Shown: one piece after another, positions 8,783-8,980 of the stretch
How the letters are laid out: each line of letters starts with the position of its first letter
How positions within the stretch are numbered: position 1 is the stretch's first letter
DNA from: Bacillus subtilis subsp. subtilis str. 168
GTDB taxonomy: Bacteria; Bacillota; Bacilli; Bacillales; Bacillaceae
Direction: 5' to 3'
DNA: 64,000 nucleotides
Assembly (NCBI RefSeq): GCF_000009045.1
Contig: NC_000964.3
Coordinates: 2,480,001 to 2,544,000 of the forward strand
The notes under the pieces: generated by a model
Told to the model about the DNA's origin: nothing
The model's database searches: none
Seen by the model: only the letters and a program-made list of their open reading frames with translations
Translations under genes and position numbers: made by a program

Positions 8783-8811
8783 TTGTCCGCCCATTCAAAA
8801 CACGCTAAAAT
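8783..8811 (+). promoter_or_regulatory. Putative SigA promoter of the Prli42-like small ORF
   Basis: TTGTCC-17-TAAAAT. Confidence 0.5.
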
Positions 8812-8840
8812 ATAGACAGATTGTTTAAGGAGTGAAAATC

Positions 8841-8933
8841 ATGTCTCAAAAACTGATGAAAAGCGTTTTGATCGTGATTTTGGGAGTTTTTATTCTTTCA
8901 ACTGTACTCTCAGGAATCGTCATGTTTCTATAA
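8841..8933 (+). CDS. prli42: 30-aa membrane miniprotein, Prli42-like (MSQKLMKSVLIVILGVFILSTVLSGIVMFL)
   Basis: Hand-translated; SD aaggag at 8827-8832; basic N-terminus plus one TM helix; C-terminus resembles Listeria Prli42 as I recall it. Confidence 0.75.
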   Translation: MSQKLMKSVLIVILGVFILSTVLSGIVMFL

Positions 8934-8937
8934 CGAT

Positions 8938-8980
8938 AAAAAAGCAGGCGCCTTATTCAATGGGAATATCCTGCTTTTTT
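8938..8980. terminator. Bidirectional terminator between the small ORF and yqjB
   Basis: aaaaaagcagg/cctgctttttt stem with inner tattc/gaata, overlapping the yqjB stop. Confidence 0.65.

Follow-up and report, generated by a model that had tools for sequence, protein, structure and literature searches.

A complete small transcription unit is seen by sequence inspection on the + strand at 8783–8983 of a 64-kb window of the Bacillus subtilis subsp. subtilis str. 168 chromosome (the window being the whole stretch of DNA that was analyzed). It opens with a putative sigma-A-type promoter, in which a −35 box TTGTCC (8783–8788, + strand) is separated by a 17-nt spacer from a −10 box TAAAAT (8806–8811, + strand). 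A consensus promoter scanner also picked up this pair, with 9/12 matches, and the transcription start is predicted at about 8817–8819. The Shine-Dalgarno (SD) sequence TAAGGAGTG follows (8826–8834, + strand), and the ATG at 8841 stands 8 nt 3' of its core AAGGAG (8827–8832). This ATG opens the prli42 ortholog (8841–8933, + strand), an open reading frame (ORF) of 30 codons plus a TAA stop (8931–8933) whose product is MSQKLMKSVLIVILGVFILSTVLSGIVMFL. The first-pass annotation had described this promoter, SD, and ORF, and each is present where it was placed.

The control elements are conserved across species. The −10 box and the SD are invariant in 15/15 sequences; in 14 species, the −35 box is kept as TTGTCC or TTGTTC and the spacer is always 17 nt. 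From its sequence, the 8783–8811 segment probably functions as a sigma-A-type promoter. No sigma-B-type promoter (GTTTAA-N12-15-GGGWAW, with at most one mismatch per box) was found upstream of the miniORF. Thus, the prli42 gene does not look like a member of the SigB regulon.

The start codon is best placed at ATG 8841, and this start is invariant in the ortholog alignment. A mechanical ORF list gives the same frame as 33 amino acids, begun at an in-frame GTG at 8832. We rejected this codon because it sits within the SD and because a 1-nt indel shifts it out of frame in most orthologs. The gene had been described as missed by the ORF track. This is true of a first-stage length threshold only; in public assemblies, the gene is called.

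Few ORFs of this kind exist in the window. Counting both strands of the 64 kb, only two ATG ORFs of 20–50 amino acids have a strong SD hexamer at proper spacing, and the prli42 ORF is one of them. The other (37601–37714, − strand) encodes a 37-amino acid product, MKKKKARKREGFFLDFLFEVGGELFLLLFRCVHKLFI, and is placed between a spo0A-like gene and an Oxidored_FMN gene. No NCBIfam family matches this second product; thousands of NCBI assemblies contain a gene call with exactly the same product.

The shared terminator and neighboring genes

The miniORF is followed by a predicted bidirectional intrinsic terminator (8935–8983, both strands). Its 14-bp stem (8935–8948 paired with 8970–8983) begins two bases past the TAA of the miniORF and encloses a 21-nt loop. 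The computed folding energy of the hairpin is −21.5 kcal/mol for the + strand (z −4.25; none of 200 shuffled sequences did as well) and −20.1 kcal/mol for the − strand (z −3.06). We read it as a bidirectional terminator because an A-run lies on one flank and a U-run on the other; by these features, transcripts probably terminate at 8935–8983. A simple terminator scanner overlooked the hairpin because of the length of its loop. The core stem arms, AAAAGCAGG and CCTGCTTTT, are identical in 14/15 sequences, and the loop is variable. The one departure, in locus L012, is a single A-to-G change that retains a G-U pair.

Together, these elements would define a monocistronic transcript of ~165–170 nt (8813–8981, + strand). 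The predicted architecture would match that of the Listeria rli42 RNA, which is a monocistronic transcript of ~170 nt with its own terminator.

The terminator is shared with a convergent gene, as had been noted from the sequence. This gene encodes a YkuD-family L,D-transpeptidase (8953–9513, − strand), and its stop codon (8953–8955) falls in the hairpin loop. The last transpeptidase codons (I-K-K-Q) form one stem arm. The C-terminal transpeptidase residues encoded by the loop differ between species; the stems stay constant.

The gene neighborhood is fixed. The left neighbor, divergent from the miniORF, is a methylmalonyl-CoA epimerase gene (mce; 8329–8757, − strand; TIGR03081). The full order, which is the same in 14/14 species, is peptidase, carboxyltransferase, mce, miniORF, L,D-transpeptidase, ArAE-family gene, and ABC ATPase. 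If the terminator is active on the minus strand, the mce promoter must lie inside the prli42 unit or overlap it. On the minus strand, promoter-like sites at 8849..8820 and 8838..8809 extend over the −10 box, the SD, and the start codon of prli42. Transcription of mce and of prli42 may interfere with each other. The minus-strand −10 in the 8758–8850 region is not kept in the B. amyloliquefaciens group or B. atrophaeus (loci L012–L014).

Some calls of the surrounding genes vary. The mechanical ORFs at 8953–9513 (− strand) and 9535–10533 (− strand) begin at upstream TTG codons and measure 186 and 332 amino acids, where public calls give 176 and 322; the downstream starts are probably the true ones. 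In CP032867.1, a complete B. subtilis-type assembly, the carboxyltransferase gene (propionyl-CoA carboxylase beta-like; the equivalent of window positions 6813–8366) is uncalled between mce and the M20 peptidase gene. Another assembly calls the carboxyltransferase at 484 amino acids, compared with 507–509. These differences may reflect disruption or start-site variation in some strains.

Elsewhere in the window, the Rfam family DicF (RF00039) matches 43728–43774 (+ strand) at 50 bits, just over its gathering score of 48. The matched segment is antisense to part of the last ~20 codons of a DXP synthase gene (43713–45614, − strand), adjoining the start of an FtsJ/S4 methyltransferase gene. The most likely explanation is a hairpin that arose by chance within coding sequence.

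Coding selection and family identity

The substitution pattern identifies the miniORF as a real protein-coding gene under strong purifying selection. Orthologs were collected by a genome scan with narrow patterns, taking one genome per species. The resulting 14 loci cover the B. subtilis group, the B. amyloliquefaciens group, and B. atrophaeus only, with no Listeria, B. cereus-group, or Staphylococcus locus in the set. A 30- or 31-codon ORF is kept in all 14. Across 15 sequences, the variable columns are distributed 7/3/21 over codon positions 1/2/3 (binomial p 9e-5 for the position-3 excess), and the amino acid replacements are conservative (L/F, V/A, V/I/M, T/S, and F/Y). By the Nei-Gojobori method, dN/dS of the miniORF ranges from 0.04 to 0.14, compared with values above 2.5 for a control frame of the same DNA. 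The comparison with B. atrophaeus gives 0.04 and that with B. velezensis 0.08; against two other species, synonymous sites are saturated.

The peptide is also better conserved than its neighbors. Its identity across species is 80–100%, compared with 52–93% for the adjacent Mce. For B. velezensis, the identities are 80% for the miniprotein, 54% for Mce, and 74% for the transpeptidase. The N-terminal tail, M-S-Q-K-(L/F)-M-K-S, is as invariant as the helix that follows it. Within the helix, G15, S20, S24, and G25 do not vary, and only T or S occurs at position 21.

The product is matched by the family model for Prli42. The NCBIfam equivalog model NF033880 (“stressosome-associated protein Prli42”) scores it at 37.3 bits against a cutoff of 27.5 (E 1.6e-9), and the match is full-length, with residues 1–30 on profile positions 1–31. 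Because peptide and model are both short and hydrophobic, composition by itself could produce a match, and control peptides were therefore scored. Eight such controls (four with the native N-tail and a shuffled helix, three fully shuffled, and one reversed) gave no match to NF033880 at E ≤ 10. The B. velezensis ortholog scores 40.1 bits against the same model.

Public records agree with this assignment. Relatives that are 77–97% identical carry the name “stressosome-associated protein Prli42” in multispecies RefSeq and UniRef records. Thousands of NCBI assemblies (2617 blocks), complete chromosomes included, carry a gene call for exactly this 30-amino acid product, and its context there is constant.

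Broader searches returned little. No Pfam family matches the 30-amino acid peptide, and no PDB chain is similar to it at E ≤ 10, whether searched by single sequence or by profile. Only two matches passed E ≤ 0.001 in a HMMER search against 1.84 billion representatives, and both belong to the B. amyloliquefaciens group; at this database size, a 30-amino acid query carries too little information. The only local Rfam match is RF01474 (rli42), whose full model (1–171) aligns to 8813–8981. This match is weak (14.2 bits against a gathering score of 80, E 0.82), and it supports only a shared architecture, that of a terminator-ended RNA of ~170 nt.

The peptide resembles Listeria monocytogenes Prli42 (NF033880; RNA rli42, RF01474) in several respects. 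It has 30 amino acids, compared with 31 in Listeria; it has a basic N-terminal tail that includes K4, a hydrophobic helix that reaches the C terminus, and a full-length match to the family model. We consider it highly probable, from sequence comparison, that the miniORF is genuine and translated and that it belongs to the Prli42 family as the B. subtilis-group ortholog of prli42. The first-pass annotation had proposed a Prli42-like membrane miniprotein orthologous to that of Listeria, which an HMM search of the family could check; the above-cutoff model score, the clean shuffles, the RefSeq names, and the single-helix prediction (see below) all agree with that proposal.

The identification as Prli42 is not new. 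The family, its occurrence in Bacillus, and the annotation of this gene are already public. A 2023 review citing Impens 2017 states that Prli42 shows high conservation in 42 Firmicutes, of which 21 are Bacillus species and 6 are Staphylococcus species. By this account, the existence of the Bacillus ortholog was published together with the discovery of Prli42. The gene is not hidden: it is a named and routinely annotated family member whose conservation in Bacillus was reported at the outset.

Peptide topology and a possible contact with RsbR

The peptide is predicted to be a single membrane-spanning helix. AlphaFold2, run on the ortholog alignment, models one continuous helix over residues 3–29 with a mean pLDDT of 94. 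Residues 1–8 are MSQKLMKS, with a net charge of +2 (K4 and K7). Residues 9–30 have a GRAVY of 2.84 and reach the C terminus; the GRAVY of the whole peptide is 1.9. By the positive-inside rule, we infer an N-in, tail-anchored topology, with residues 1–8 cytosolic and residues 9–30 predicted to be transmembrane.

Two features of the peptide suggest partners. The N-terminal tail is as invariant as the helix, and this suggests a specific cytoplasmic partner, beyond a topology signal. Furthermore, S20, S24, and G25, with T or S at position 21, form the i/i+4 pairs of a typical helix-packing face. This small-polar face hints at a second partner within the membrane.

Known bacterial miniproteins offer a comparison. 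Those of the KdpF, AcrZ, MgrB, and CydX type also have ~30–50 amino acids and one transmembrane helix, and they act by binding a larger protein or complex. They share no sequence similarity with the B. subtilis peptide. Their genes usually lie in or beside the operon of the partner, whereas B. subtilis prli42 is solitary between unrelated, oppositely oriented genes.

B. subtilis has an RsbR/S/T stressosome, and in this it resembles Listeria as a Bacillota host. In Listeria, Prli42 is reported to be a 31-amino acid membrane protein that is necessary for SigB signaling after oxidative stress; residues K4, K5, and R8 are reported to bind RsbR E109, E110, and E113, and Prli42 to tether RsbR partly to the membrane.

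Residues corresponding to this contact are partly conserved in B. subtilis. On the peptide side, K4 is kept, K5 is replaced by L and R8 by S, and a lysine is present at position 7 instead; the tail thus carries +2, compared with +3 in Listeria. On the RsbR side, an alignment of PDB chains (RsbRA = 2BNL) places RsbRA 105–111, PDQESTE, opposite Listeria RsbR 109–115, EEKPEDD, right after a 4-residue deletion. The matching acidic loop is shorter and less acidic in RsbRA, where its acidic residues are D106, E108, and E111. The RsbRA sequence used as the query is identical to 2BNL over its first 136 residues. Compared at the residue level, the charge character appears to be retained on both sides, in a weaker and shifted form. 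Such a pattern is compatible with either a coevolved, weaker contact or no contact at all.

A mechanism can be outlined by homology with Listeria Prli42. The sigma-A-type promoter would yield a monocistronic mRNA of ~165 nt that ends at the terminator common to the L,D-transpeptidase gene. The strong SD and ATG 8841 would direct synthesis of a 30-residue, one-helix peptide, with the basic tail (K4 and K7) in the cytoplasm and residues 9–30 across the membrane to the C terminus. By analogy, the tail would touch the acidic surface of the N-terminal non-heme-globin “turret” of RsbR-family proteins, and the peptide would keep a fraction of RsbR/RsbS complexes at the membrane. The small-polar patch (S20, T21, S24, and G25) would provide a face for an intramembrane partner. 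In B. subtilis, such tethering would at most tune the timing or amplitude of SigB activation, or act in one stress only, and would not be a required input.

The literature on B. subtilis offers little direct guidance. Our literature search found no experiment on B. subtilis Prli42, and combining Prli42 with B. subtilis or RsbRA returned Listeria work and reviews only. This agrees with the first-pass statement that the function in B. subtilis is not well established. According to one preprint, the mechanism “could be conserved in B. subtilis.” The literature pictures the stressosomes of this species as foci in the cytoplasm, a point of difference from the Listeria system.

Studies of the SigB pathway narrow what such a contact could do. 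In B. subtilis, Khadka et al. 2025 report that the SigB response is tuned, and not abolished, when residues of the RsbRA N-domain are replaced by alanine. They also report that a stress-inducible, RsbT-dependent SigB response persists without all RsbR paralogs, or without RsbS; Prli42 is not mentioned. From these results, a Prli42-RsbR contact in B. subtilis could at most be modulatory and cannot be a required input.

Later Listeria work points in a similar direction. Tran et al. report that a prli42 deletion mutant grows as the wild type does under several stresses and is not acid-sensitive, and they suggest that other membrane proteins also localize RsbR1. [quoted passage not shown] The first-pass annotation had taken Prli42 to be needed for SigB activation in Listeria. 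This need was reported after oxidative stress, and the later studies weaken it.

The same annotation had also raised, conditionally, the idea of a hidden input to the general stress response. This idea is weakened by the Listeria mutant, the B. subtilis SigB response without RsbR or RsbS, and the partly conserved contacts. By analogy with Listeria, the peptide might bind the B. subtilis RsbR paralogs with a measurable effect on SigB, a prospect that we rate at somewhat less than an even chance. A strong SigB phenotype in B. subtilis is unlikely.

The question matters for the general stress response. What activates the environmental SigB pathway of B. subtilis is a long-standing question, and a membrane miniprotein that touches the RsbR turrets is an attractive candidate for a sensor link. 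The gene is intact and strongly conserved, and B. subtilis is the best genetic model in which to examine the idea. The gain to be expected is probably modest, because the gene is already annotated, SigB is inducible without the stressosome, and Listeria prli42 mutants have a weak phenotype or none. The name also calls for caution: “stressosome-associated” has been spread by homology over thousands of Bacillus genomes, and the experiments are confined to Listeria.

Other roles for the locus

The conserved job of this Prli42-family miniprotein might lie elsewhere than in the stressosome. It could be an accessory or regulator of a membrane complex, such as a respiratory oxidase or an envelope protein, acting through the small-polar helix face, with RsbR binding in Listeria being lineage-specific or secondary. 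The distribution of the family favors this reading. Prli42 is reported in six Staphylococcus species, and S. aureus and other cocci have no RsbR, RsbS, or RsbT; thus, the conserved role of the family may not be the stressosome. Furthermore, cytochrome bd subunits copurified with Listeria Prli42. The lack of a prli42-deletion phenotype in Tran et al., with their suggestion of other RsbR1-localizing membrane proteins, fits as well, as do the partial conservation of the charged RsbR contacts and the helix residues S20, S24, and G25, invariant alongside T or S at position 21.

Other evidence weighs against a role of this kind. The peptide has no sequence similarity to solved small subunits, cytochrome bd accessory chains included. 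The gene is not beside cyd or another membrane-complex operon; its fixed neighbors encode methylmalonyl-CoA epimerase and an L,D-transpeptidase on the opposite strand. The N-terminal tail is as invariant as the helix, and this suggests a cytoplasmic partner. On balance, we hold a conserved role away from the stressosome to be a tentative and somewhat improbable explanation. As a specific candidate, a cytochrome bd small subunit of the CydX/CydS type was rejected, with no PDB match at E ≤ 10 and with neighbors (mce, the YkuD transpeptidase gene, and the ArAE-family gene) that are not cydAB.

A related proposal is that the Prli42 copy is an overlooked modulator in B. subtilis. It might serve as a membrane tether for a subset of RsbR-paralog complexes, shaping the timing of SigB or its oxidative branch; or its ancestral role might be independent of the stressosome, with the name reflecting a Listeria-specific side activity. 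We judge this two-sided proposal to be unlikely.

The locus might instead be primarily a regulatory sRNA, as “rli42” of Listeria was first annotated, with the ORF incidental or secondary in a dual-function RNA. The unit is of sRNA-like size, has its own promoter and terminator, and bears the weak full-length resemblance to RF01474. Because it also overlaps the candidate minus-strand mce promoters, as well as the transpeptidase mRNA at its 3' end, the unit could conceivably act in antisense. Against this, third-position changes dominate, replacements are conservative, dN/dS is far below that of the control frame, and the strong SD is invariant. The Rfam score falls far short of the gathering threshold, and the Listeria product was seen as a protein by N-terminomics. 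A role as sRNA only was rejected on the codon-level selection and the invariant SD, and a primarily regulatory RNA is very improbable.

A type I toxin-like or otherwise membrane-perturbing hydrophobic peptide, curbed by antisense RNA, is hardly credible. As in the TxpA, BsrG, and BsrE class of Bacillus toxins, the product is a short membrane peptide of high hydrophobicity, and its transcript overlaps neighboring ones, with a common terminator on the convergent side and minus-strand promoter-like sites over its 5' end. However, prli42 belongs to the core genome rather than to a prophage, and its synteny is fixed both across 14 species and among public B. subtilis assemblies. Its sigma-A promoter looks constitutive, and its SD is strong. 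There is no dedicated antisense gene, and only the transcripts of the neighboring genes overlap it. The charge layout also differs: Bacillus type I toxins typically end in a charged tail, and this peptide does not. Its family is another named one, Prli42, whose Listeria member is expressed without toxicity.
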